A stretch of 64,000 nt of DNA from Saccostrea cucullata (Eukaryota): positions 124,001-188,000 of the forward strand of contig NW_026936636.1 in the NCBI RefSeq assembly GCF_032062105.1. Reading direction: 5' to 3'. This document shows, piece after piece, positions 1,506 through 18,671 of the stretch (the first letter of the stretch is position 1; every line of letters starts with the position of its first letter). Made by a program: the position numbers and the translations under genes. The notes under the pieces are model-generated. The model worked only from the letters and a program-made list of their open reading frames with translations, was not told the origin of the DNA and ran no database searches.

Positions 1506-1705
1506 GTTGAAGTAGTCAATTTGGCCGGCAGCCGGTTCCTAGGGAAAACACTGCTAACTTGCCATTATGAAGTTTATATTACAAAATCTATATCTAAAAT
1601 GGAAGAGGGTTACATAATGAAGCACATGAACAGAAAGATATACATGTAAAATTATGTATAATATAACACTCTAGTCACAACAACACACCACTACTCATTA
1701 CTCAC

Positions 1706-1860
1706 CAATTAAGATCTCCCAGTTCTTACACGCTTGTGTCACCTGGTATGCACACCTCATCTCTGAGTATGATACACCCCCAATGATGAAAATAATTAGC
1801 CGTGGTCCGCTTTTGTAGCCTGCCTGGCTTTTGTCTTTATGCCAGTGTCCATATCTAGCA
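1706..1860 (-). CDS. STXBP1: Munc18 coding exon 15 (penultimate)
   Basis: [51 protein letters not shown]; AG/GTGAGT. Confidence 0.95.
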
Positions 1861-4800
1861 CTGAAATAGAAGTAACTCGTGACGCTAGAAAAGTTTGACA
1901 AAGGCAGATATTTACCATCTCTGCCAATTTTCAATACACAAAAAGAGATGTATACACCTTGGCACAATTTATCTATTAGCCACACCAAAAGAACTGCATT
2001 TCATTCTGTATATACATGACATTGTATTATATTAATAAATAATTAACATTCCTGTACATCATCTAATTTTAAACTTTCATGAAATATGCATGCTAAATAC
2101 ACATGATTGGGAAGGCTAAAATGGCCAATGGAACTATGGTGCAACTGTAGACATTTTTTATTGGCCATTTTGAAAACGAATGGGCCATCAATATAATCTG
2201 AAGGGCCATTTTAAGAAATAACAAAATGACAAACAAATATGAAATACAACAGAAATCACGTTTTTAATTAACCGAATCTAATTTCTAACATATGCAATAC
2301 AGCAAATTAAGGGAAACTTGCATATAATTTAATTTACCCGTATTTTGTATTAAATTAAGTCAAAATTTGGAAAGAGCACCACCTATCCTACAAATGAATG
2401 AAGTAATGTATCTAATCTCAGTGCTTCAGTGTTTAACCAGAAGCAGTTTTTATGGTTTTCAACCAATGAGATTTGTTGTTTTAAAATTGACTGCATTTAA
2501 AATGAAAGTAAAACAAGTAAGAAAGTCGTTCACAAAATATTTCCAAATAGCATTGAAAAATGTTGAATGCGCACCTTGGCGCCACTATTGATTGATTTAA
2601 TGTGCCATTTTTCACTTCAATGCCACTATTGCGCGTGGTGCAAGCCCTTCCTAATCACTGAATACACGGTGAGAACTATCTGACACCTGCGGCATCTGTT
2701 TCATAGGAAAACCAGAGCCTTGTTTTCATTAACACTTTTACATTGTGCAATCTGACACCCTGTCTATCTAACATCCTGTCTATTTCGACACAAAATGTGT
2801 GTCTCTGTGCCTGTTGGATTAGACAGATATTACTGTATACCATGTACTGTATATAATTTAAAGCTTTAATCTTTTTTCTCAAACTGAGAAATGACATACT
2901 TCTTTATGTTGTTGATGTCAATAGATAAAAACAAGGTCAATCTCTCCGAACTAGCCTAATTAAAAATAAAATCCCTCTCACTGTTTTGCAAACAATTTTT
3001 TTTTTTCATCATTTAAAAGTTGAAAAATTAATTTTATCAATAAGTGAAAATAATTACGGTACCCAAGTGTTAACTTATTTAAGAAAAGAAAAGTTCATTT
3101 TTTTCTGATTTCAACATTCAAGCTGAAAAAAAATTTAATTAGGATATGTAGGTAGGCATTATTCTTTTTTGGGACTTCTTTAATAAAACAAAAACATCTA
3201 AGTAACACAAGAATATTAAAGAAATAAATTAGTGTTTTCAGGAGGGGTGACAATTTGTAACAGGTTAACTAATTACTCAGTCGGAATGATGGCAATCAGT
3301 TAGAAAATCTGTGATCAGTCAGGCCAAAAAATAAAAATATGTCTATACCTTACTTTAAAATCTGATTTACAATTTAAAAAAAAAAATTCTCAATTTCAGC
3401 TGATTTAGAAGAAATAATTTAAATTAATGCTCTTCAGACGATAGATTGTATCGCTGCATTTCATTTCCGGAAATATGCATAGCATTTCCGACATTTTTAA
3501 ATTTCATTTCCGACATTTTTTGTTTTCATTTCTGACATAATTTATTTTTCATTTCCGGAATTTACCTGTGCGGCAATTCAATGTTTTCTAAGTAAAAGAA
3601 AATGGAATTTTAAAAGTATTTATACCAAAATATAAAAAAACCCATCTATACATATATGCATACATGTAGCACTAAGTCTGGGTAAAAGAGTTCAATGAGC
3701 ATAAAACTTTTTCACCACCTTTAATGTGCACTAAATTAAATGTCAGTGACAGCACCATACTTATGTCCAAGTCACTGATAGATTAACAAAATTGGATTTC
3801 AATGATTTATTGATGATTTATTCCTTTAAATTTTTCATAAGTAAAGTTGTCAAATCTGTTACTATAGGTACTACATATGTATTTCAAAAATGTCGGAAAT
3901 GAAAGCAAAGAAATGTCGGAAATGAAAACTAAAAAATGTCGGAAATGAAAAGTTGATAATTACCAAAAATTCCGGAAATGAAATGCAGCCGATTGCATGT
4001 TGTTTTATGTCCCATTCGAGAAAAGGTGTGAGGGTAATTGTTCAGTTTTTAATATGTAAATTCCTGTTGAAAAATTAAGTTGCTACACAATCCGCCCAGT
4101 ATGTCTTTATGATATTAATCAGATCAAATGAGTTTTGTAAACTGATACCATTGTGTATCCTACAACACTTATCCTTTGTAGTTATTGTACAATTTTTTTT
4201 TAAACATTGTAAATTACTATTGAATTATAATTCAGACTGTGTATCTATTCAGAGTTTAGAGTGAAAAAACAGAATGACCTTGGCACATTTGGTCTAGAAA
4301 AAATTGTCAATGTCATATATGTTTTGGGATTTTCATGGTTTTTCCTTTTGAAATTGAAATACATTTGTCAACTGTTACAGATCAAGCATAAATGGAATAC
4401 AACAAATGCCTTTTTTTAAATTGATTTTTTTAATTATTCATTGATGTGTATATGGATAGATTTACTTGAAAAAGAATGTCAGGAAAATGTGTATGTAGAT
4501 ATATCTAGTTGCTTCATCAGCCGGAACATCTTGCGGTTAATCAATTAGCAATCCCTACCTTATAGCATGACAGTGAACAAAGTTTAAAGTTGGAATTTTC
4601 ATAATTCAATCAATCATAAAAAAAATTTGATCTTCATAAAAAAAGCATTTAAAAAATTACAATTGAGTAAGTGCTATAAATTTGGGTCCATTAAGAAAGC
4701 AAACAGAGGCAATACAAGTTTAATTTTTAGTGAGGATTTAATTTTTGCATTCTTAGCAAGGGTGCTGAGGTTCCTAACATCAGATATGGTTAAAAATTCA

Positions 4801-7800
4801 TTGTGTTTTATGTGAACTAGCTTCTTTAGAGATCATTTTAAAATTGATAAATTACATCCTGCTAAATATAAAATACCCAGGTACATGTACCAATTCTTAG
4901 GGGAAAATGCTTTGTGTCTAGCTAAAATTTCCACTGATGCGGGATTTTGTTTCAATGCCTGATATATATTGTTTACCTGATTGGTGGCCCTCTGTATCCC
5001 CCCGCAGATCTTGGGGCCCCGCCTGACAAGAAGGGAAATTGTCTGGAGTCCAGCTTATCGTCTACAGCCTCCTGGGAATACAAAATAATTTTTCTCCTTT
5101 TAGTATAATTGGATATTTTAGAAAATGCATAGCATTAATCTAAAGGGTGCTTGTCCCATTGCATAGCGAATCAGTTTCTTAACACAAGTTTTTTATGTTG
5201 AATACATCTGTCTTAAAGAAGGGACTACATGTAATAGAAAATTCAACATTTAGTGTTCACCAAGTGACTTTTGAAAAAAAAAAACTTTATTAGAAAAACT
5301 GTCAGTTAAGTTTGTTTCAGATTATCAAAATACATGAATCATCCTCTTGTTTGATGTCAATAAAGCCTATTTTGGATTTACTGAATTTAATTTCCATTCA
5401 ATATAACCAAAATTCAAAAAATTGGAAATGCCTATGTGGCAATGTTTTTAAACCCTGGTCTGAAGGCCATAAAACTTAGATGAGCTAACTTCTAAGGAAT
5501 TTATCATGGGAAAGTGAGACTGAGATCAAAAGTGAGCTTGTTTAAGTCTTATGACCCCAGAGCCTGATCCCAATCTGGATTCAGTGATGACCTACCTCCA
5601 TGATGTCCTTGACATAGGGAGTCCAGCGGGACATTTGGTATGTGTTCTCCGCAATCTTGGTTTTCCTGTTAAATGGTTGGTAGGGCTGGGACTTCTTCCT
5701 TCCTCCCTGTCAAATTACAAGTCTTACTGTGATTTTAATTTATCAAAACAATTTGAAAAAAAGAGAATATTAAATTAACTTCAAAATCTTCATTAAAAAT
5801 TAAAATTTCACAAATTTCCAGACTTCTTTCTTGTGAGACAATGCACTAATCTTAACACACAGAAGCATCCTATGGTTTCACAATGGTCACCAGGCCTAAC
5901 ATAACTCATGCTGTAAGGATTTCTACACCAAATAAACCCATCAAAAATACTAAACAGGCAAGACAAATGCTTCCCTATGAGTCTTATTAAAAGCATGGAT
6001 AGTGCATTATTTCAACAAAACTAGGCAGCCCTTCAATAGTAAGATATCCACAGCCAAAAATTGGGAGAATTTTTGAAGATTTCAGTCACCAGAAAAGTAA
6101 CATCCAATCAAACACATGTATTTGAAATTAAAGATCCTGCATCCATTCAAATTTGGGAAATAAAGATCAAGGTTTTTTTCCAAAGTGAAAGAAATCTGTA
6201 AAAAAAAAAAACAAACAAACAAATCCAAAGCTAAAAAATTTTTTGAGAATGATTAAGATCCAAGGGAAGAAATCTGCATTCTGCGTATCTACTTCCATGC
6301 AACAATTGGTGAACTGAAAATAAATGATCTCTCATTGCAGTGTCTAAACACGTATATGATCTTGTGAAGTGAGCAATAATTTAATTGCTATGTTAGTATA
6401 TTACTCACCTGCTTTCAAATAATAGACAAAGTATAAAAAGAGGCCGATGGGCCTTGACTGTCACCCGAACCTCTATAACATAAGTTTTTCATGTTGGTTG
6501 CCTAAAATATTCACGTTTTTGCTCTATCTGAAGTTTTGATAAAAAGAATACAATTCAATTAAAAATAGTTGTCATGTTTTTTTAACCTAGTCCTCAGAGC
6601 TCTGAAGTGAATGATGTTAACCAGACGAAACTTTTAATAAAGAATGAGAACCATGTCTACGCAGGCATTGTAACATAGAAGAGGCCTTGCAGTTCAAACT
6701 GAGAATGACTAAATAAGTTGTCCTACACTGGCATCTCGTGATGGCTTGTATGAGTAAAATTATCTTGTAAGGGATGAAAAACTACAATCAATCTAGGAAT
6801 TTTGATCTTGTTAAAATGAGCTCAAGAGAAGTTCATGATCACAGCTTTTCATAATGGTAATTTTCTTTTTTTAAAGTTCAATCTTTCTCTGATCCCGAAT
6901 TATAGCAAGCTGAATATTTTAATACTTAGTCATTTTCTTCCAAAGAACAAAGACATTGAATCATTGCATTGGTAGACCCTTTCATCAGCAGACAACATGT
7001 GATGACATTGTCACAAATAACATTTTTTTTTTCTCCTTCACCAAAAGATGCTATAAATTAATTTGAATGGTTCAATTGTTCGGAGAAGAAACTGAAATTG
7101 TCGATATAAGACTTATGGACACTACACAATACTGTAGATTCCTAATCATACATGGGGAATTATTTTCCCTGTAATTTCGCTAGAAACATCACTCGCAAAA
7201 TATCACTTGCTTTTATTTTTATGGTGTTAAAATCCATGTAAATTCGCGAAAATATTATTCTTGCGATTTGACGTTAAAGAGGTATTTTGCAATAATAAGT
7301 ACTCGCAAAAAATAAGGAATCTACAGTAACAGATGTGAATGATGAAAAAAATATGTCATCTTCAAAACTCAGTGACAAAAATTAAAACACAAAACATTCT
7401 TGCAGTCTACCAGATATGTTACTTTTCTTGCATTCTACCCATAACATTACCTTGTACAACAGTAACCATAGACTGTGGCATAGCAATAAGAAGCCCTATA
7501 TGCATGAAAACACTATGTTCCCAGTGTATGCGATATATATGTATAATCAACTAGAATAAATCTATTTCACCTCGTTGCATTATTAATGTATTAGGGTTTG
7601 ATATTTTGTTATTTAATTTGTTAAATAAACTGCATCATGAATCCTTATTCCATTGCATTTTTGCCAATGTTGTCAACTTCAACTAAAGTTGAATACTGGA
7701 TTAAACTTCAAAAAACAGCAATATTATTCTAAAGGGAGATCAGAGTTCTAGATTTCAAAGAATTTTTAAGAAGATAGATCATCAAAGGTTTGCATGCAAA

Positions 7801-10800
7801 GGAGTTACTTTGCAATGTTTGCCCCCCAAAAAGGAGAAGAAATTCATGTTGAAATAAACAGCAAATGGCTTATAAAATCCTTTTAAAAGACCTAAAAGAA
7901 ACAGGACTTTGATGCAGTTAATTTGTGGACCCAGTGTTAGTAACAGGGAAGTTTGGGATCACACGGCAGACGGAATGATTCTCTTCACATACCGGTACCA
8001 GGGCCTTTTTCAACTTATTTTTTATGTCTTTCTTTTCTGTTTCAACTATCTATAAAAAGGTGGATAAAAAACATAAATGGCTGACAAAAATTACTGTGAT
8101 TCACTATTTGAAGGTAGACAGAAATATGTGTAGTAATTCTAATATTAATAACAAATTTAGTTTTAAAGGTCACTAAACAATTAAAATTCAATTCTACAAG
8201 ACATAATAATTAAAAGTTCTGACAGTACAGGGAATAGTGAAAAAAATATCTGTGTTGTTTAACAAAATCTAGTCTACTGTGATGAAAAAACAGAGGAACA
8301 TCGGGAATTTTTCACTGCTATCAATCAAAAAAATTCTACCATTAGAACCCCATTCACCGAGCAACAGCCAATTAAAAAAAAAAGAAAGAAAAAAGACGAA
8401 AAAGTCCTTTCTGTGCACACATTTCAGTTCCATAACTTGAGATGACGATATTTGATTTCCCCAAAATAAAATACTTTAACCCATGGTATTTATGCTAATT
8501 CTAAGAAAAAGTCAACTTTTTTTAAAACGAAAATTTAATAATTTTTTATGAAAACAAGATTATCTAAGATAATTATACATCATGGCAGCAATACAGATCA
8601 ATGCGGCAACAGAAATTTGAAAAAGGGCGACAACTGAGCTGTGAGCAGAGTCTAGACACATTGAATCCTGCTCTCACCTGAAAAGTCCCATAATCCTCGA
8701 TTAATCCCACACTAAACGTTTTGTTACCTTGTGGCTGAGGCATGCAAATGTTCATGAGATCTTAATATGAATTAAATCTCAGGTACAAAAAAAAATGTGA
8801 ACCTTCCGTCATGATAAGTGCTTAACTTTAACAAATCCTTGGATATTCTTTTTGCACCTTTTTTTTTCAAACAACACATCAATGATTGGTAGAATGAATG
8901 CTTAAGAACTTAATAAAAGAATAATTTTCAAAAGGTTTAAAAATTGGGAAGAGAAGACTTTATATACAAAATATGTGAAAAGTGCAAGAATTTTAAAATG
9001 AAACTTAACACAGAAAATTAACAAATTTGAGTCATGAAATTGTACAGAGTGTGCTAAATGTGTACCACCCAATAAAAAACCCACCTTCATTTCAAGACAC
9101 CTACATCTACACTACAGTAGTAAGACATTTCCTCAGGCTACTTACATCCTGAATGATGGGGACACCCAGGTTCTGCATGTTATTTATGATACACTTCACA
9201 TCCATAGGAATCTGGGCATGTTGCACTAGCTTAGCCAGGTTTTCCTCTGTTATTCCTGTAAAAATTATTCTAATATATTAAATTACTGCTTGGTTATTGA
9301 GCCAAAGCTAACAGAAACATTAATCATCTTCTTTTACACAATATCCTTATATTAACAATTATGATTTTAAAAGATGTTGAAAAAAATATAAGATTAATTA
9401 TGAACGTTTCGAACCTGATGGGATAAAATGTTGAAAAAAATATAAAGAATATGTCGTTGGGATTATGACATCATGATATTGGCTATTCAAGATATCAGAG
9501 CTCAAAATACAGAAGTTCAACTGAATTTTTAAATATCAGATGGAAAAGAATAAAATCTTATCACATATACCGTAATTTTTGGGTTATAGGTCGATGAGGT
9601 ATATAGGTCGAAAGGCTCATTTTCAGCCTTAATTTTTGAAAAATCCTAAGATAGGACGAATTACTATATAGGATGAGGCTTTGTTTCCCGTTTTCTAAAG
9701 ATTCTTACGCAGATACAATATTAAACCCCTAGAATTACCGGGGTTATGACATAAATGTATAAAATTAAACAGGTATTTTAATTACAGAATTTAAATAAAG
9801 TTTTTTTTTTAAAGTAGTTAAAACTTTTTTGACTTATTTTTTTCCAATCATGCCTCCGTAGTTTCACACCGTTGTTAAATCAAAGGCATAAATAACACGT
9901 AAATACATTATTATTTTACAGCTATAATATTCGGGAAATACCCGAGACCAAAGAATAGTAATTCCGATTTCAGAACAACTTGGACACAATTCCTGTTAAC
10001 TTTATTCAGACATTATTTACCGGTGGACGACAATTACTTTGATGTCCGCCATTTTTATTTTTCTTCTCCAGGGATTCGCTAAAACACGCAATGACCATTG
10101 AATGTATGTATCAAGCAACAGTAAAGAACTGAAATCATATCAACACTCTAATAAGTTTAATTTATAAATTTAATTGAGAGTACATTCACAATTTGACTGT
10201 CAACATGAATTTCATGGCTTTGTTTGTTCAATGATGTGTAACACTAATACCCTATAACGGCACGTGGGTTTGTTTAAATACTGAACACAGGTGTTACACC
10301 TTTGTGTACACAGTGAATCCCTTTATCTTTCAGACAATTAAAATAGAAGCCAATCTTTGTATGCCGGTAATTCAATGTAAATTATATTTCTGTCATCCGT
10401 ATTTATTGCTAATTCTTTGCTTAAGACAATAAAAAATATTTAATATACTATTTCAATATATCGCTACTAATAAATGGTAAAAACATTACAGTTGTGATCT
10501 TGAAAATTTTTCCGTATTTAAAATTTTGATACGGTTGCGGTTTTACTTTTAGTAAACGGTAGCGACTTCCTTACTTCACAAGATGGATACCGCATGATGT
10601 TAATGGATAATACGTTGAGGAATTATTTAATAGATGAAGCAATGTTGTTTTCCTTTGTCATCAACGGATAATTAATGGAATTTATTTTGTAAGAAAGCTA
10701 TAGAATAAATATGGGCATTACTTTTTCTGCATAAAATAATGAAAAAATATGAAAGTGGCACAGATTTGCTTTGAAATTGATGTAAATTTTATTGATTTTG

Positions 10801-13800
10801 TCGTAAACTTGAGCCTTAGAAAGGTCGAATTCGTATACTGGGCGACCCCAGCGGTTCTGAGAAAAAAAGTATCGACCTATTATCCGAAAATTACGGTAAA
10901 TGCAATACAATATATATAATATGCATTGGTGTTTGTGTAACATCTAACTACACCTAAACTTAGCTTGTCCAGAAGGATCGTACCTCCTTTGTGGATGACG
11001 TAGAGCAGAATGATGCGGACTTTGTCGTAAGCCATAATGTTCTGGTCTAGAAGAATTGGTACAATGTTTCTCATGTGATCCTTGATCTTCTCCCCCTCAG
11101 GATCTGTTCCCATGGCCAGGTCCTAAAATAATAAACATCAGCTCATTACAACTATCTGACTAATGGTTTCAGGATGTAGTAAATTAAAATATTCATAAGT
11201 AATTTTCAGCCTGCGAAATACGATTTCATTAAGATTTTTGATGTTACAAAACACTTTTCAATTCATCACATGTTTACTGTTACAATAAAGAAATAAGCTT
11301 GTTTTTTATGATACTGTGTAATCTACAGCTTAGTAACAATGATAACCTGGTATGAAAATCTTTACTGGTTGACCAACATGTAACATGGGTAAAAAAATAC
11401 TGCCTGTCCTAATCAGCTCATACAATTTGAGTTCAGAGTATAAACATATCCCCTCACCTGTTCCACTTTACACAGTCGATCTACGTGTTTCTGGTATTTG
11501 TTCATGCAGTCCTCTGCCAGGTGGAGGTGTGTGGAGTATTTACTGAGTTCCTTCTGATACTGAGGCATCTTCTTCAACATCTGCGACAGATCTCGAATGT
11601 TAGCCTTCTCCCCGTCATTCATCCGTTTGTCTTGTGCGAATTGTTTTAATTGCTTTGTGACTTGCCTTTTTAAAGAAAAAAGGAAAATATGTATCAATTT
11701 ATTGAAAACATCAGATTTTAATATACTGAGGACAAGAAGTGAATAAATTGTAGAAAACATGTATCAATTTATTCAAAACATCAGATTTCAATATATATAT
11801 ATACTGAGGACAAGAAGTGGATGAATTCTATGTCTGACTTACTGTGATACAATTGCGATGTGCTGATGTCTCAGACCGACCCATAACTCGTCATTTTCAT
11901 CAAGGAGAGCCTCTTTCTCGTGAATTTCACCACTTGTATTATCATACCTATAGAGAACATAACGTATAAAACTATTAGAGTTTACATGTATAATCATACA
12001 CAGACATAGATAAATAGTAAACTCTTACAAAGGGTGACAACTCTTGCTGAGAAATCATTTTCCTTAATATGTCTTGTTTATTCTCAACTTCTCTCGTGGC
12101 ACTTCATGTTGACTAATTGTAAACTAAAGAAGGTGATTAATAGCACTGAACATTTATAAGAATTGGATATGTTCAAAAAAACTTACTTATAAACATCGTT
12201 AATAATTGGTAAAAGATCATAAGCCATGGCCTGAAATGTCAGTTCATGAAGTAGAGGGGAGATTGGATCAAATCCTCGGTCTATAATTAGAAGCTGAGAT
12301 CGGTCCTTTTGTGGTCCCTGTTAAATTAAAATTCAGGATATGAATTTATGCAGTTAAACCTCAAAACATTTGAAATGAAAATATATTTTAAGAATACAAT
12401 GGAAAAAAATATGTATGAACCAACATTTCTTAAGTAAAAATTAAACAGAGTTTGAACAATTATGAAAGTAAAAATATTGTAAATATGGAAATTCAAGTAA
12501 AGCTATTTCTACAAAACTTGAATATCTCCAAAAGTATCAATGCTTCCATGTATTATTTTAATTAATTTAAACAATGCATTATTTTAGTATTGCAGAAAGA
12601 ACCCTCAGGTGTGTGGTTATTTCACCTAATTGATGCATTTCATAACAAACCATTATATCCATATAAAGAGCAACTTATATGTCTGAATTACATGTAAATT
12701 CTACAATATATTCCTCCAAACAGCCCTACCTCTCCCATGGTGTGATCGTCAGCTCTGTAGGCATCCAGCTTCTGCTGTACCATCTGAGCAAACTCTGCAT
12801 TCCTGTCAAAGTCACTGTAAAGGAATGTAATGGCATGATGAGAACTGGAGATTTACAATATCCTCTAAGTCATGAACTGAACAAGGTTGAATGTTTGTAA
12901 GCTGGAGATGATGCTTGCTTATTCATTGTCCAAATAATTTCGATTGTTCAGCTTTTCATTTAGCTAACACATGTAAAAATAATGACAACAAAGCTAAAAA
13001 TTTGAACGATAACTTATTTATTTTACTCAAACCTTTTTTTCCCCCTTTTCCTTTTATTCAAGTTCTATAAAAATTTGAAGGAATATTTTTTTTTTTTGCA
13101 GAAAAGCAGCAACAGTCATGAAGAGCTACTTTCATTTTGAATACAACATTGCTCTATCAATTTGCTAAGTGAAGTCAATGTGATTGCTCATTTACATGTT
13201 AGCTTCATACCCTTAAAAAATAAACCTGAAACAAAAATTAAAACTGAACACAATTTTTGACAAACCCACCTTCTATATCTGACACTGGGGTACTCTCCGA
13301 GTGTGGCACACAGCGTAGCTATCTGTTCAGCACAGCGTTCTAGGTTCATGGTCCTCCCGGACTGTCTGAGAGGATTATAATAATACTGGAATGTCTCCGC
13401 AGAATCCAGGTGATAGACCTACAAGTCACAATGGTGGAAGAGTGGATCCAAGGAATTTACAGACTGAACACAGAGGACAAGATGAAATGATTACAGTACA
13501 AACCATGCCTTATGTCAACAGACAAATTCTAAGAACTATTCTAATTATAACTTCTTTAAACTAGAGACAAAACTCTACCCATATTTGATAAAAATGAACT
13601 TTAGACGAATCTAAATGTATATTCAAATTTGGAAATGTATATGTAACGTTCCATAACTATAGTTTTATCTTTTAATACATGTATGCTGCTATTTGTTGAC
13701 TGAATAATCATGAATTAATATTCCGAATGATTTTCTCTACCACCGTCTATTGGTTCAATCAATAGAAAAGGAAAAACTACAAACTTTAGTTCTAATTTCA

Positions 13801-16800
13801 TGAAGTAAGAAGACAAATAAATTTAGAATAGGTACTGAGTACCGTAATTTACGGAATATAGGTTGATACTTCTTTTTCTCAGAACCGCTGGGGTCGACCA
13901 ATACAGAATTCGACCTATTTAAGGCTCAAGTTTATGAAAAATGCCCCCTGATCTGTAAAATTTACCTCAATTTCAAAGCAAATTTGTGCCATGCCACTTT
14001 CGTAACTTTTTTGATTATTTTTCGGAAAAAAATCAATGCCCCAGTAAACAATAAAATATTTATTCTATAGCTTTCTTACAAAATAAATTCCATTAATTAT
14101 CCGTTGATGACAAAGGAAAACAACATTGCTTCATCTATTAAATAATTCCTCAACGTATTATCCATTAACATCATGCGGTATCCATCTTGTGAAGTTAGGA
14201 AGTCGCGATCGTGTACTAAAAGTAAAACCGCAACTGTATCAAAATTTAAAATAAGGAAATTTTTCACGATCACAACTGTAGTGTTTTTATCATTTATTAG
14301 TAGTGATAAATTGAAATAGTATATTAAACATTTTTTATTGTTTTATGTTTATTTAAATATAAAATGAGTGAAATAATTTGTTGCCATTCAATTCCTACAT
14401 TTAATTACCCCCCCCCAAAAAAAACGCTATTCATTACCGTTTTTTTAAAAATTTAATTAATTATAATACCGGTCAAACAAACTTATCTTGAATATACCGA
14501 TACAAAGATTGGTTTCTAACAGAATTTTAATTGTCTGACAGATAAAGGGATTTACACTGTGTTAACACCTGTGTTAGTTTAAATGCCTGCGGGGCATGAT
14601 TCAGAAACCCACCAGTGATTGGGAAGGGCTTGCACCATGCGCCATAGTCGCAATGAAGTGAAAAATAGCACATTAAATCAATCAATCATGGCGCCAAGCG
14701 CGCATTCAATTTTTAGTGATGTTATTTGGAAATATTTTGCATACGACTTTCTTTCTTGTTTTACTTTCGTTTTAAATGCAGTCAATTTGAAACAACAAAT
14801 CTCATTGGTTGAAACCTGTCAAAAAGTACTTCTGGTTAAACGCACTTACATGAGGTACAATACTTCATTCATTTGTATGGTAGGGCTGTTCCCTTTCCAA
14901 AACTGTTGTAATTTTAACACAAAATACGGGTCAGTTATATTCTAAGCAAATGCCTTTAAATTTGCTGCATTTCATGCGTTAAAAGTTGGATTCGGTTAAT
15001 TAAAAACGTGTTTTCTCTCGTATTTCATATTTGTCACTTTGTTATTTATTAAAATGGTTCTTCAGATTATACTGATGGCCCATTTATTTTCGAAATGGCC
15101 CATCAAAAATGTTGACAGTTGCACCATAGTCTCATTTACCATATTGGCCTTCCCAATCACTGACCCACGTTCCGTTATAGGGTATTAGTGTTACATATCA
15201 TTGAACAATCAAAGCCGTGAAATTCATGTTGACAGTCAAATTGTGAATGTACTCTCAATTAAATTTATAAATTAAACTTATGGAGTGTTAATATGATTTC
15301 AATTCTTTACTGTTGCTTGATATATACATTCAATGGTCATTTGCGTGTTTTAGCAAATCCCTGGAGAAGAAAAATAAAAATGGCGGACATCGAAGAACTA
15401 GTAATTGTCGTCCACCGGTAAATAATGTCTGAATAAAAATTATTAGCAATGTGTCTAAGTTGTTCTGAAATCGGAATTACTATTCTTTGGTATCGGGTAT
15501 TTCCCGAATTATAGCTGTAATATAATAACGTATTTACGTGTTATTTCTGCCTCTGATTTAACAACAGTGTGAAACTACGGAGGCATTGAACAGGCAAGTT
15601 GGAGAAAAATAAGTAACACAATTTAAAGAAGTTTTAACTACATTTTTTTAAAAACTTTATTTAAATGCTGTACTCATTAAAATACCTGTTTATTTTCTTG
15701 ATACGTTCATGTCACGGAATAACCCCGGTAATTTTAGGGGTTTATCTGTTCCGATACGTTGTATCTGCGTAAGAATCTTTAGAAAACGGGAAACAAACCC
15801 TTGTCCTATATAGTAAGTTCGTCCTATCTTAGGATTTTTCAAAAATTAAGGCTGAAAATGAGCCTTCCGACCTATATACCCCATCGACCTATAATCCCGA
15901 AATTACGGTATATGCTTACCTGTGATTCATATGGGAGAAAAGCTATGTTAATTTCCTTAAGAGTTTTTATGTATTTAGCAGCTGTTGACTTGCACAATTC
16001 ATTGAAAAGAACATCTGGACAGGCTAGAAACAAAATGTAATTTTTAAAAAATTTAGATAACTTTTATTTCATATTAAGTCAAAAGAATAAACCGACACAT
16101 AATCCTTTTTCCAAAAAAGTCTAGAATTCTTTCATCAGTTAATCTTTTTGGATTAATGACTGTTTCCTCTAACTCACCTTCTGTAAAGTAAACATGTGCT
16201 GACCTATACTGGGTGTTGGTGGGGTGGCTAAAATCTTGCTTCAGTAAATTAACCGACTAAAAGAGGAGAAGAAAAGTTTGTGCATGCTATTGATTCCTTT
16301 AACATCCCTCAATATGCATTTAACTGTAAAATACATCAGGTTGCAGGACAATAGTTCTACACACAGTAAGAACTATCATTGAATGTATAAATTTTAACCC
16401 TCTCTATGAAGTAAGTTGAGAGACAGTTTTTTGGATTGTTGAAAAGATTTTTTTTTCTCACTGACACAGTCTGTATAAATATTCTCAAAAAATGAATTTG
16501 ATGTATAGAACTTCATTTCCTTACCTTATCTGTTGGTGTTATCAAATAAACAGCATCCAGCTTAGGCAGTCTTTCTCTTCTCTTATTTATATCTTCAACC
16601 ACTGCATATTTAAAAAAAATAATTTATTGCAAGTTCATAGAGTATTTTACCTTAATATGTCAAACACACGGACATGTATTTGGTCAATTTGGATACAATT
16701 TTTTTTATTAAACTGTTTTAATAAGAATGCTTAAGAGTTTTAATCAACCTTAGCTGCAATAGAGAGCAATAGCTATTCATTTCTTGAATTTTATAAAATG

Positions 16801-18671
16801 CTCCAAACCTCACATTCAAGAGATACACTTAAAATAATTTGAGTTCCTGAATGAGTTCTATTAAAGCATAAATGATAAAACTATTTAAAAGAATTAATAT
16901 TAAAGTCCACCTCTCCTTTTCACGCAATATTGCATTTTAAAAAAATAAAGACAAAGAACACTTTTAATCTCCATTAGATTAAGAAAAAATAAACTTGAAA
17001 AACAATTTCATGTTATTCCCTAACATAATAATAAAATTTAAAAAAAAAGTCTTAACACAAATACATGATAGCCTTGTGTCCTCGTGCATCTTGCAGCATG
17101 CTGAAATGTCTATATATCATCCTCATAATCAGCTGAAGGGTTTCATAAATTATTTTAATTAATTGCCATCACTTTCCATTCTACAACCATGACTCTAATG
17201 TTACAAGTACGATCGACTTACTAAGGCGCGGTAAACAAATTGGACAACTGGCATCAATATCGTACTAAAATTGGATTAAAATCTCTAAGATTAAGAAATT
17301 CAATCTTTATAGTCTTGTTGTATTCGTGTTTATTTTGTAATTATTTTACAATTGTTTGCATTAAATACGGTCCCAAAATGTGATTCATGTCATTTTCTTA
17401 AATCCGCAACAACCATTTTTTCTGTAAAAATTAAACAAATATATGTTAGTAATCAATTGATTTAATTTTATATTGTGTGGAATTGTTGCTATTTTCTATT
17501 GGGGCATCCACTGACACGTGCGGTCGCGTAAACCTGTACTTGAACAAGCCCGACGCCATAAAAAATAAACTTGCATGTTATTCCCTCTGACATAATCTCG
17601 TGCATCTTGCAGCATGCTGATATCATCCTCATACTCAGCTGATCTACAATCATCACTTTCCATTCTCCGTTCTTTTTCACCGCTTGGACAACATCTGACA
17701 TAATCTCTGAAACATAAAGATTAACAAGTAAATACTTCGGTATTTCCTAAATATATTGTTTTCTGACAAATATTTTAATCCTGATATTGTGTGCAAAAAA
17801 CAGATGTAAAAAAATTGGCTCTGCTTTATGCAATGTCTCCTCATTTATTATCTTAAACAATATACTAATGTTAAAAAACAGATGAAATTGGAACTGATTA
17901 GATTAATGTCTATGTTACATTTTTTAATCACACCTTCTGTTAAAATTTCATGAAATGTTTAAAGTTATTCCATTATAGACGACTTTCACATTTACAAAAG
18001 TTATTCCCCTTTGCGTTCAATCCAAGGTGGAGGCAGATTAATGTCTATGTTACACTTAATTACACCTTCTGTTAAAATTTCATAAAATGTATATCAGATA
18101 TTCTGTTATTGTAAAGTAAATGTAAACAACAGTCTACTGAATATAACAGTTGCAAAATCCACAAGAATTATTCAATTTACAAACATTGATAATTTTATTT
18201 AGTAACTTATAGAATTTTTTATACTGGCATAAATCTAAGTAAATAAATTTTGCAAGTGTAAGTGGGAGGGGAAGTTGGATAGAGGAAACTCGAACTTATA
18301 GGAGATCCTTGCAATTATTTTTCACTCGCTCGATTTTATCTGGTATTTGTATTATTTATTTATCCGTCTGTTTATTGTATTTGAATTTCAAACCATCATA
18401 CTATCGCCTTTACAAATTATGCGTAATAAGAGTAAAAAATTTGGCAATATCGATCGCAGGAAGGCTTATAAATATTAAGTTGACATTTCCGAAAAACTGC
18501 ATTAGTTTGCAACACATGGGTGCACCCCTTTTCACATAAACTATTAGAAATAAAGCACTACTCTTAAATATTAAGCTTCCAACCGCACTTTATCTAAATC
18601 TTTCTTTTAAAGAACATTAAATACGGTGAAAACATCAGCCTACTTTCGTGAACTGCCTGTTTGAGCGACAT
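1706..18671 (-). CDS. STXBP1: Sec1/Munc18-family syntaxin-binding protein (Munc18-1/Rop/UNC-18 orthologue), multi-exon, 3' terminal exon not found in window
   Basis: Phase-consistent exons 18644-18671, 17575-17706, 16525-16601, 16178-16256, 15920-16023, 13270-13418, 12730-12814, 12187-12317, 11843-11947, 11458-11665, 10984-11122, 9146-9255, 5596-5706, 4977-5071, 1706-1860. Peptides include [119 protein letters not shown] and [21 protein letters not shown]. Confidence 0.97.
2102..2660. mobile_element. MITE with CAGTGATTGGGAAGG TIRs and 6-bp TSD (copy 1)
   Basis: TSD AATACA at 2096-2101 and 2661-2666; inverted homologue at 14613-15162. Confidence 0.85.
3452..3990. mobile_element. MITE with 20-bp TIR and subterminal TTTCATTTCCGACA repeats
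   Basis: GCTGCATTTCATTTCCGGAA at 3453-3472 and inverted at 3970-3989; 8-bp TSD GATTGTAT/GATTGCAT (one mismatch). Confidence 0.8.
4977..5071 (-). CDS. STXBP1: Munc18 coding exon 14
   Basis: [31 protein letters not shown]; AG/GTAAAC. Confidence 0.92.
5596..5706 (-). CDS. STXBP1: Munc18 coding exon 13
   Basis: [37 protein letters not shown]; AG/GTAGGT. Confidence 0.94.
7132..7326. mobile_element. TA-flanked Tc1/mariner-pogo-type MITE nested in a decayed Helentron-like element (about 6436-7380)
   Basis: TA-CTGTAGATTCCT...AGGAATCTACAG-TA. Confidence 0.75.
7451..7495 (-). CDS. STXBP1: Candidate alternative Munc18 cassette exon C (45 nt, [15 protein letters not shown])
   Basis: GTTTTCATGCATATAG acceptor, AAG|GTAATG donor, stop-free, phase 0-0. 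Confidence 0.35.
7993..8049 (-). CDS. STXBP1: Candidate alternative Munc18 cassette exon B (57 nt, [19 protein letters not shown])
   Basis: Strong acceptor TTTTTATCCACCTTTTTATAG, donor CCG|GTATGT, purine-rich, stop-free, phase 0-0. Confidence 0.55.
8678..8734 (-). CDS. STXBP1: Candidate alternative Munc18 cassette exon A (57 nt, [19 protein letters not shown])
   Basis: TTTGCATGCCTCAG acceptor, CAG|GTGAGA donor, stop-free, phase 0-0. Confidence 0.45.
9146..9255 (-). CDS. STXBP1: Munc18 coding exon 12
   Basis: [36 protein letters not shown]; AG/GTAAGT, ends phase 0. Confidence 0.94.
9570..10896. mobile_element. Non-autonomous Tc1/mariner-pogo(Tc2)-like element, copy 1
   Basis: TA-CCGTAATTTT...AAAATTACGG-TA; inverted copy at 13842-15908. 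Confidence 0.88.
10984..11122 (-). CDS. STXBP1: Munc18 coding exon 11
   Basis: [46 protein letters not shown]; AG/GTACGA. Confidence 0.95.
11458..11665 (-). CDS. STXBP1: Munc18 coding exon 10
   Basis: [15 protein letters not shown]...[26 protein letters not shown]...LCKVEQ; AG/GTGAGG. Confidence 0.95.
11843..11947 (-). CDS. STXBP1: Munc18 coding exon 9
   Basis: [34 protein letters not shown]; AG/GTAAGT. Confidence 0.94.
12187..12317 (-). CDS. STXBP1: Munc18 coding exon 8
   Basis: [43 protein letters not shown]; AG/GTAAGT. Confidence 0.95.
12730..12814 (-). CDS. STXBP1: Munc18 coding exon 7
   Basis: [28 protein letters not shown]; AG/GTAGGG. Confidence 0.94.
13270..13418 (-). CDS. STXBP1: Munc18 coding exon 6
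   Basis: [16 protein letters not shown]...[24 protein letters not shown]; AG/GTGGGT. Confidence 0.94.
13842..15908. mobile_element. Same Tc2-like element, copy 2 (inverted), carrying a nested MITE
   Basis: TA-CCGTAATTT...AAATTACGG-TA; reverse-complement similarity to 9570-10896 throughout. Confidence 0.88.
14613..15162. mobile_element. MITE with CAGTGATTGGGAAGG TIRs and 6-bp TSD (copy 2, nested)
   Basis: TSD ACCCAC at 14607-14612 and 15163-15168; empty site at 10264-10269 in the paralogous host element. Confidence 0.9.
15920..16023 (-). CDS. STXBP1: Munc18 coding exon 5
   Basis: [34 protein letters not shown]; AG/GTAAGC. Confidence 0.94.
16178..16256 (-). CDS. STXBP1: Munc18 coding exon 4
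   Basis: [26 protein letters not shown]; AG/GTGAGT. Confidence 0.93.
16525..16601 (-). CDS. STXBP1: Munc18 coding exon 3
   Basis: [25 protein letters not shown]; AG/GTAAGG. Confidence 0.93.
16984..17182 (-). pseudogene. Fragmented intronic duplicate of the 3' part of Munc18 exon 2
   Basis: Blocks 16984-16997, 17009-17029, 17081-17104 (24 nt exact), 17115-17136 and 17167-17182 match 17560-17666 collinearly, separated by insertions. Confidence 0.85.
17575..17706 (-). CDS. STXBP1: Munc18 coding exon 2 (ends in GC donor)
   Basis: TTTCAG acceptor; [43 protein letters not shown]; donor CAT|GCAAGT. Confidence 0.93.
18644..18671 (-). CDS. STXBP1: Munc18 coding exon 1 (MSLKQAVHE+K)
   Basis: ATG at 18671-18669, donor A|GTAGGC, phase 1 fits next exon; resembles the UNC-18 N-terminus MSLKQ. 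Confidence 0.85.

Follow-up and report, generated by a model that had tools for sequence, protein, structure and literature searches.

The window examined here, a 64,000-nucleotide (nt) stretch of the Saccostrea cucullata genome (contig NW_026936636.1, positions 124,001–188,000 of the forward strand), contained a Munc18/Sec1 gene on its minus strand. Two segments of intron 12 of this gene, candidates 1 and 2 (c1 and c2), were probably real, clade-specific and optional coding exons of Munc18, because they formed sharp islands of conservation, kept their AG and GT borders and showed coding-type substitution in the Munc18 frame. A preliminary description of the window had proposed four frame-preserving optional exons for one surface loop of Munc18 before the conserved sequence YQMSRWTP. 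The proposal was upheld by evolutionary evidence for the first two segments and was not upheld for the other two, a hydrophobic 45-nt segment (candidate 3, c3) and a 3-nt segment encoding Gln (candidate 4).

Judged by its sequence, the gene is a mollusc Munc18/Sec1 orthologue (STXBP1/Rop/unc-18); the Sec1 domain and the collinearity of the exons placed it in the SM family. Exon 13 matched residues 453–489 of squid s-Sec1 (1epu) with an E value of 7e-11, rat Munc18-1 chains were also matched, and PF00995 was found on the exon-10 fragment. On the minus strand, the phase-0 intron 12 occupied the 3439 nt between 9145 and 5707 inclusive, and its borders were backed by 65 junction reads. At 16984–17182, the window also showed an open frame with ..ISACCKMHE...

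The intron was compared with L001, a contig of 3.5 kb from the genome of a related species that was reached through exon 10 (69 residues), and with two contigs of a third taxon (L008 and L009). The only blocks of the window that could be aligned to L001 were exons 10–13, the c1 region (8755–8617), the c2 region (8068–7935) and one further block (8429–8324). The identity to L001 was 88.9% for c1 and 93.0% for c2, and 87.0, 90.1, 84.7, and 81.1% for exons 10, 11, 12, and 13, respectively. When a global alignment was forced, the intron background showed 28–57% identity and the bins of c1 and c2 showed 82–97%. The c2 region had 94% identity across 89 nt, and c1 was also carried by L008 and L009. 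The splice borders of c1, cctcag/ at the acceptor and /gtgagagcagg at the donor, were invariant in the three taxa. Those of c2 were compared in two taxa, in which the acceptor AG was kept (ttag/ or atag/) and the donor side, /gtatgtgaagag, was identical. An alignment of the orthologous intron had been suggested in the preliminary description as a check on the array; it gave sharp conservation peaks on segments 1 and 2, and no peak against L001 on segments 3 and 4. Two GT donors were found in tandem at c2, 6 nt apart (7993–8004; GTACCG and GTATGT), and both were present in L001. Use of the upstream donor, GTACCG, would remove the final two residues (VP) and keep the frame.

The substitutions within the two islands followed the codons of Munc18. 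In c1, every frame other than the one running on from exon 12 into exon 13 was closed in at least one taxon, and in both c1 and c2 the Munc18 frame required the fewest amino-acid changes among the frames. The four differences between the window and L001 in the 57 nt of c2 were all synonymous and the peptides were identical. The c1 of L001 differed from that of L008 at five sites, each of them a codon position 3. The c1 of the relatives was 69 nt long (23 residues), ending in ..GTFQGIAQ or ..GTFHGIAQ, and that of the window was 12 nt (four codons) shorter. Among the inferred substitutions of c1 and c2 together, 11 of 14 were at codon position 3, for which our own binomial estimate under equal rates was P ~7e-4, with the frame set in advance by the flanking exons. 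The differences of constitutive exons 10–13 to L001 fell at position 3 in 23 of 27, 13 of 14, 15 of 17, and 17 of 21 cases, respectively. By this comparative sequence evidence, selection acts on c1 and c2 as protein-coding segments read in the frame of Munc18. The c1, c2, and c3 regions were single copy in the 1.17-Gb assembly of the species at both the DNA and the peptide level, and an origin of the three from a repeat or a paralogue was therefore excluded.

Table 1. Features of the Munc18 gene and of its intron 12, in window coordinates.
Feature	Position	Strand	Observation
Munc18/Sec1 gene	1,700-17,700	minus	exons collinear with full-length homologues, 56-60% identity
Constitutive exon 12	9146..9255	minus	ends ..GVPIIQD; donor GTAAGT at 9145; junction reads
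Candidate 1 (c1), predicted exon, 57 nt	8678..8734	minus	conservation island in L001, L008 and L009
Conserved intronic element adjoining c1 downstream	8612..8677	minus	78% identity in a 40-column bin, background 28-57%
Conserved non-coding block between c1 and c2	8324..8429	minus	80.6% identity to L001; stops in frame 0
Candidate 2 (c2), predicted exon, 57 nt	7993..8049	minus	tandem donors; conservation island in L001
Interspersed repeat, ~200 nt, in intron 12, outside the exon system	7130..7330		at least 1607 candidate copies in the same genome
Constitutive exon 13	5596..5706	minus	starts acag/GGRKK; match to s-Sec1 and Munc18-1; junction reads

The RNA data comprised three oligo-dT RNA-seq runs that were labelled with this species and came from unspecified tissues, and a fourth run that was a metatranscriptome; joints were listed from at least three reads. 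The sole joint across intron 12 was 5705/9145, which skipped 3439 nt and was covered by 27, 15, and 23 reads in the three runs (65 in total). A metatranscriptome contig (X1) also carried exon 13 followed at its loose end by the last nine letters of exon 12. The main mRNA thus joins exon 12 straight to exon 13, and transcripts that lack the candidate exons exist. The junction check laid out in the preliminary description, from 9146 through each candidate to 5706, accordingly returned only the direct joint in the three runs. The read depth over the candidates was zero, except that ~117 nt of unassigned read coverage from run X20 fell into the c1 bin. Peaks of RNA depth at 7203–7333 and 5511–5546 consisted of partly fitting reads, and the former was due to the interspersed repeat at that place. 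Interspersed repeats occurred in both intron 12 and intron 13 (7130–7330 and 5511–5546), each with high RNA depth.

Several observations weigh against c1 and c2 as exons of Munc18. No inclusion joint of at least three reads was present for any candidate in the three oligo-dT runs, as against the 65 skipping reads, and no read or contig with c1 or c2 spliced in was found in these runs or in the metatranscriptome. One metatranscriptome contig of low depth spanned c2, and it was unspliced, since it included both flanks. As the splice sites are good and the exons are nevertheless skipped, active repression or tissue-specific activation would be required. The support for c2 came from two taxa only. 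A search of a protein collection with the open frame of c2 gave no match, scans of metagenome contigs with degenerate patterns of c1 and c2 gave none either, and the best 120 matches of a profile search of database proteins were all arthropod, with no annotated mollusc isoform among them. Finally, c1 and c2 were absent from intron 12 of the four other lineages in which it was fully covered (L003, ~2 kb; L010, 66 nt; L012, ~104 nt; L013, 377 nt). The exons are therefore not ancient and are restricted to the clade of the window. Neither exon was seen in the partly covered introns of L004 and L005 (first 10 kb) or L006 (1.7 kb).

Intron 12 varied widely among the mollusc-like lineages, the shortest being 66 nt and the longest over 10 kb. 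In L003 it opened with a 55-nt minisatellite of 28 copies (L003:10105-11655) that made up most of the intron; each unit repeated the last ~18 nt of exon 12 together with its GTGAGT donor, giving 28 tandem copies of a 5' splice site. Exons 10 and 11 were fused in L010, and exons 11 and 12 were fused in L011 and L012, the intron 12 of L012 apparently starting with GC. When the protein collection was searched with the open frame of exon 12, only genomic read-through fragments were retrieved. Entries P0170 and P0173 were rejected as spliced transcripts; they proved to be genomic sequence in which exons 11 and 12 were fused, and their short intron apparently started with GC.

An alternative, considered improbable, is that both segments are conserved but non-coding and never enter mature mRNA. 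They would then be intronic elements of the kind of splicing regulators, enhancers or RNA structures, and their frame, borders and position-3 bias would be coincidental. Such elements would account for the lack of inclusion reads. The third conserved block of the intron (8429–8324) was plainly non-coding, and the element that follows c1 was able to pair with the c1 donor. However, the codon periodicity of c1 and c2 lay in exactly the frame that is fixed by exons 12 and 13, and the other frames contained stops or required more amino-acid changes. The changes in c2 were synonymous in four of four cases, and the 12-nt indel of c1 was in frame. Moreover, the conservation started at the acceptor region, and a search of Rfam over intron 12 matched no family.

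The conserved elements around the two predicted exons may bear on their splicing. The element downstream of c1 included UCUGCUCACAGCUCAGUUGUC, a complement of GAGCAGG at the 5' splice site of c1, and its donor-complementary part lay at 8640–8625. All pairs of the putative consensus hairpin at this donor were invariant, without covariation, and its stability was not unusual (z = 0.33). The block between c1 and c2 kept AACTGAAATGTGTGCAYAGAAAGGACT in three taxa, including L008, and GGCTGTTGCTCGGTGAATGGG in two, and it contained a short GT-flanked piece ahead of which the window lacked an acceptor AG; this block may be a splicing control element. Control by RBFOX had been read from a TGCATG near the 8734 acceptor. 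The motif was present 9–14 nt upstream of this acceptor and was also present in L008 and L009, but L001 had TGCACA and the reading was weak; no GCATG was found in the conserved downstream flanks. The motif of SRRM3/4-regulated exons is a UGC shortly upstream of the AG (bioRxiv 10.1101/2024.09.17.613571). A UGC occupied positions -12 to -10 of the c1 acceptor in all three taxa, and c2 had no UGC. As a sequence feature, the UGC of c1 is compatible with Srrm3/4-type control, with actual control by RBFOX or Srrm unsupported.

Mutually exclusive use was among the options named in the preliminary description. That the two exons are such a pair, with the choice enforced by competing RNA structure or a similar device, is considered unlikely. 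In favour of it, both exons were 57 nt long in this genome, and conserved elements followed c1 and lay between the exons. The peptides of c1 and c2, however, were dissimilar and unrelated, and c1 was 69 nt in the relatives, compared with 57 nt for c2 in L001. A duplex scan among the conserved intronic elements gave nothing beyond z = -3.1, the best of 45 pairs. All combinations of inclusion preserved the frame, and therefore nothing forces exclusivity.

The four segments had been described correctly as to their coordinates, lengths, peptides, AG/GT borders and donors (GTGAGA, GTATGT, GTAATG, and GTGAGT). The array was thus present as stated, but as a pattern it was near chance, and conservation gave independent support to candidates 1 and 2 only. 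Intron 12 contained 171 segments that were bounded by AG and GT, free of stops and a multiple of 3 in length, where dinucleotide shuffles gave 138 ± 19, and for this reason the segment pattern alone was uninformative. By a rough splice-site matrix, the four picks were within the six top-scoring segments, and at their matrix thresholds four segments were observed against 0.33 expected from the dinucleotide shuffles; the thresholds, however, were chosen post hoc and the shuffles break up natural T-runs. By the same rough matrix, the splice sites of c1 and c2 scored no lower than the constitutive sites that flank them. The large number of segments, the post hoc picks and the lack of RNA support are what would be expected if all four segments were chance open stretches and the similarity to L001 and L008 were patchy alignability between close relatives. 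This is very unlikely, because the islands matched the borders of two segments predicted beforehand to the base while the surrounding intron was at random-level identity, and because the conservation of c1 and c2 equalled or exceeded that of the constitutive exons, with c1 conserved in three taxa.

Candidates 3 and 4 were without conservation and without reads, and were therefore rejected; they are chance look-alikes. Candidate 3 (7451..7495, minus strand, 45 nt) had no match in L001, zero read depth and no joints, and was single copy. From 7911 downstream to exon 13, the window gave no alignment to L001. Candidate 4, a 3-nt CAG (6409..6411, minus strand), had unconserved flanks; no letters stood between the two sides of the exon 12–13 joint in the 65 joint reads, which therefore contained no CAG insert. 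The 64 kb of the window had three sites of the form AG-NNN-GTRAGT on this strand, or ~1 per 21 kb per strand, so that ~0.16 would be expected in intron 12, and the L001 intron had no such site.

The idea that c1 and c2 belong, as internal exons, to another transcript nested in the intron on the same strand, which would explain why they were unseen in the Munc18 mRNA of the sampled runs, is hardly credible. Neither has a start codon, both fit exons 12 and 13 in phase 0 and have a length divisible by 3 in all taxa, the intron had no further conserved coding block, and there was scarcely any RNA depth over the region.

If c1 and c2 are optional exons of Munc18 that arose within this mollusc clade, their position in the protein can be described. 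The insertion point corresponded to D453/G454 of a homologue, in a non-helical stretch (residues 447–470) between helices of residues 438–446 and 471–476 in a predicted structure (pLDDT 82.5). Inclusion of c1 or c2 would add 19 residues (23 for c1 in the relatives) between ..GVPIIQD and GGRKK, within this 24-residue non-helical surface stretch. The insertion point was located 22 residues before the tyrosine that aligned with Y473 of Munc18-1. In mammals, Y473 is located at the domain 3a/3b interface and its phosphomimetic form blocks VAMP2 binding and vesicle priming; Y473 controls SNARE templating as well (PMC5770875). Munc18 mRNA would include the exons in some tissue or stage, nervous tissue being the most plausible, and the inserts would tune the regulatory surface near the Y473-equivalent residue.

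The two predicted inserts differed in character. The motif IEDYGTF of c1 resembled the Src optimal substrate EEIYGEF and the Src substrate peptide AEEEIYGEFEAKKKG (PMC7298416). The segment encoded by c2 was lysine-rich and amphipathic. A Src-type site in c1 and the lysine-rich reading of c2 may serve as leads. A broader proposal is speculative and carries a low probability: the two new exons would be switchable modules beside the Y473-equivalent residue, c1 supplying a Src-type tyrosine acceptor and c2 an amphipathic segment that binds membrane or SNAREs, and SNARE templating in neurons or secretory cells would be adjusted through splicing, in place of phosphorylation or in addition to it.

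Munc18 is among the most conserved and constrained vesicle-fusion proteins. If c1 and c2 are real, exons specific to one clade and placed 22 residues ahead of the VAMP2-gating tyrosine would constitute a natural experiment on that surface, revealing the inserts that are tolerated there and those that selection favours, and they would exemplify young exons maintained by purifying selection in a gene central to the synapse. There is also a lesson of method: where the pattern was at chance and bulk RNA-seq was negative, the 3.5-kb contig of one relative split two probable exons from two decoys.

Inserts at the same junction were seen in other animals. Arthropod (copepod-like) ROP transcripts P0228, P0225, P0178, and P0186 had an additional Q or GQ exactly between ..VVVD and GNRKK, and the Branchiostoma gene model P0290 had 35 extra residues at the junction equivalent to exons 12/13; the loop length was otherwise near invariant over 120 arthropod proteins. 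The junction therefore appears to tolerate inserts elsewhere. Unlike c1 and c2, the arthropod inserts were only 1–2 residues long and unrelated in sequence, and their simplest cause is alternative splice-site use; the 35-residue insert of amphioxus may be a gene-model artefact. Internal cassette exons at this site of Munc18 were not encountered in any published report, mollusc annotations not being part of the material inspected.

To our knowledge, the only well-known splice variation of Munc18 is at the vertebrate C-terminus. When the predicted exons are compared with the a and b splice variants of vertebrate STXBP1 (Munc18-1), which differ C-terminally, both cases concern the same gene family, and in both the splicing alters the protein and leaves the conserved core untouched (PMC4583478). 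The STXBP1 variants, however, involve an alternative last-exon region and the C-terminus, whereas c1 and c2 are two internal predicted cassette exons before the Y473-equivalent residue, found in one mollusc clade and known from genomic sequence. A second comparison is with the short neural exons and microexons that depend on SRRM3/4 (eMIC). The lengths of c1 (57 nt, 69 nt in the relatives) and c2 (57 nt) exceed the usual microexon limit of ~51 nt, and c2 is without the UGC. In other respects the predicted exons resemble that class: they are short and frame-preserving, correspond to a surface loop of a synaptic protein, their flanks are strongly conserved and their 5' splice site is strong, and in c1 a UGC lies between the pyrimidine tract and the AG in all three taxa.

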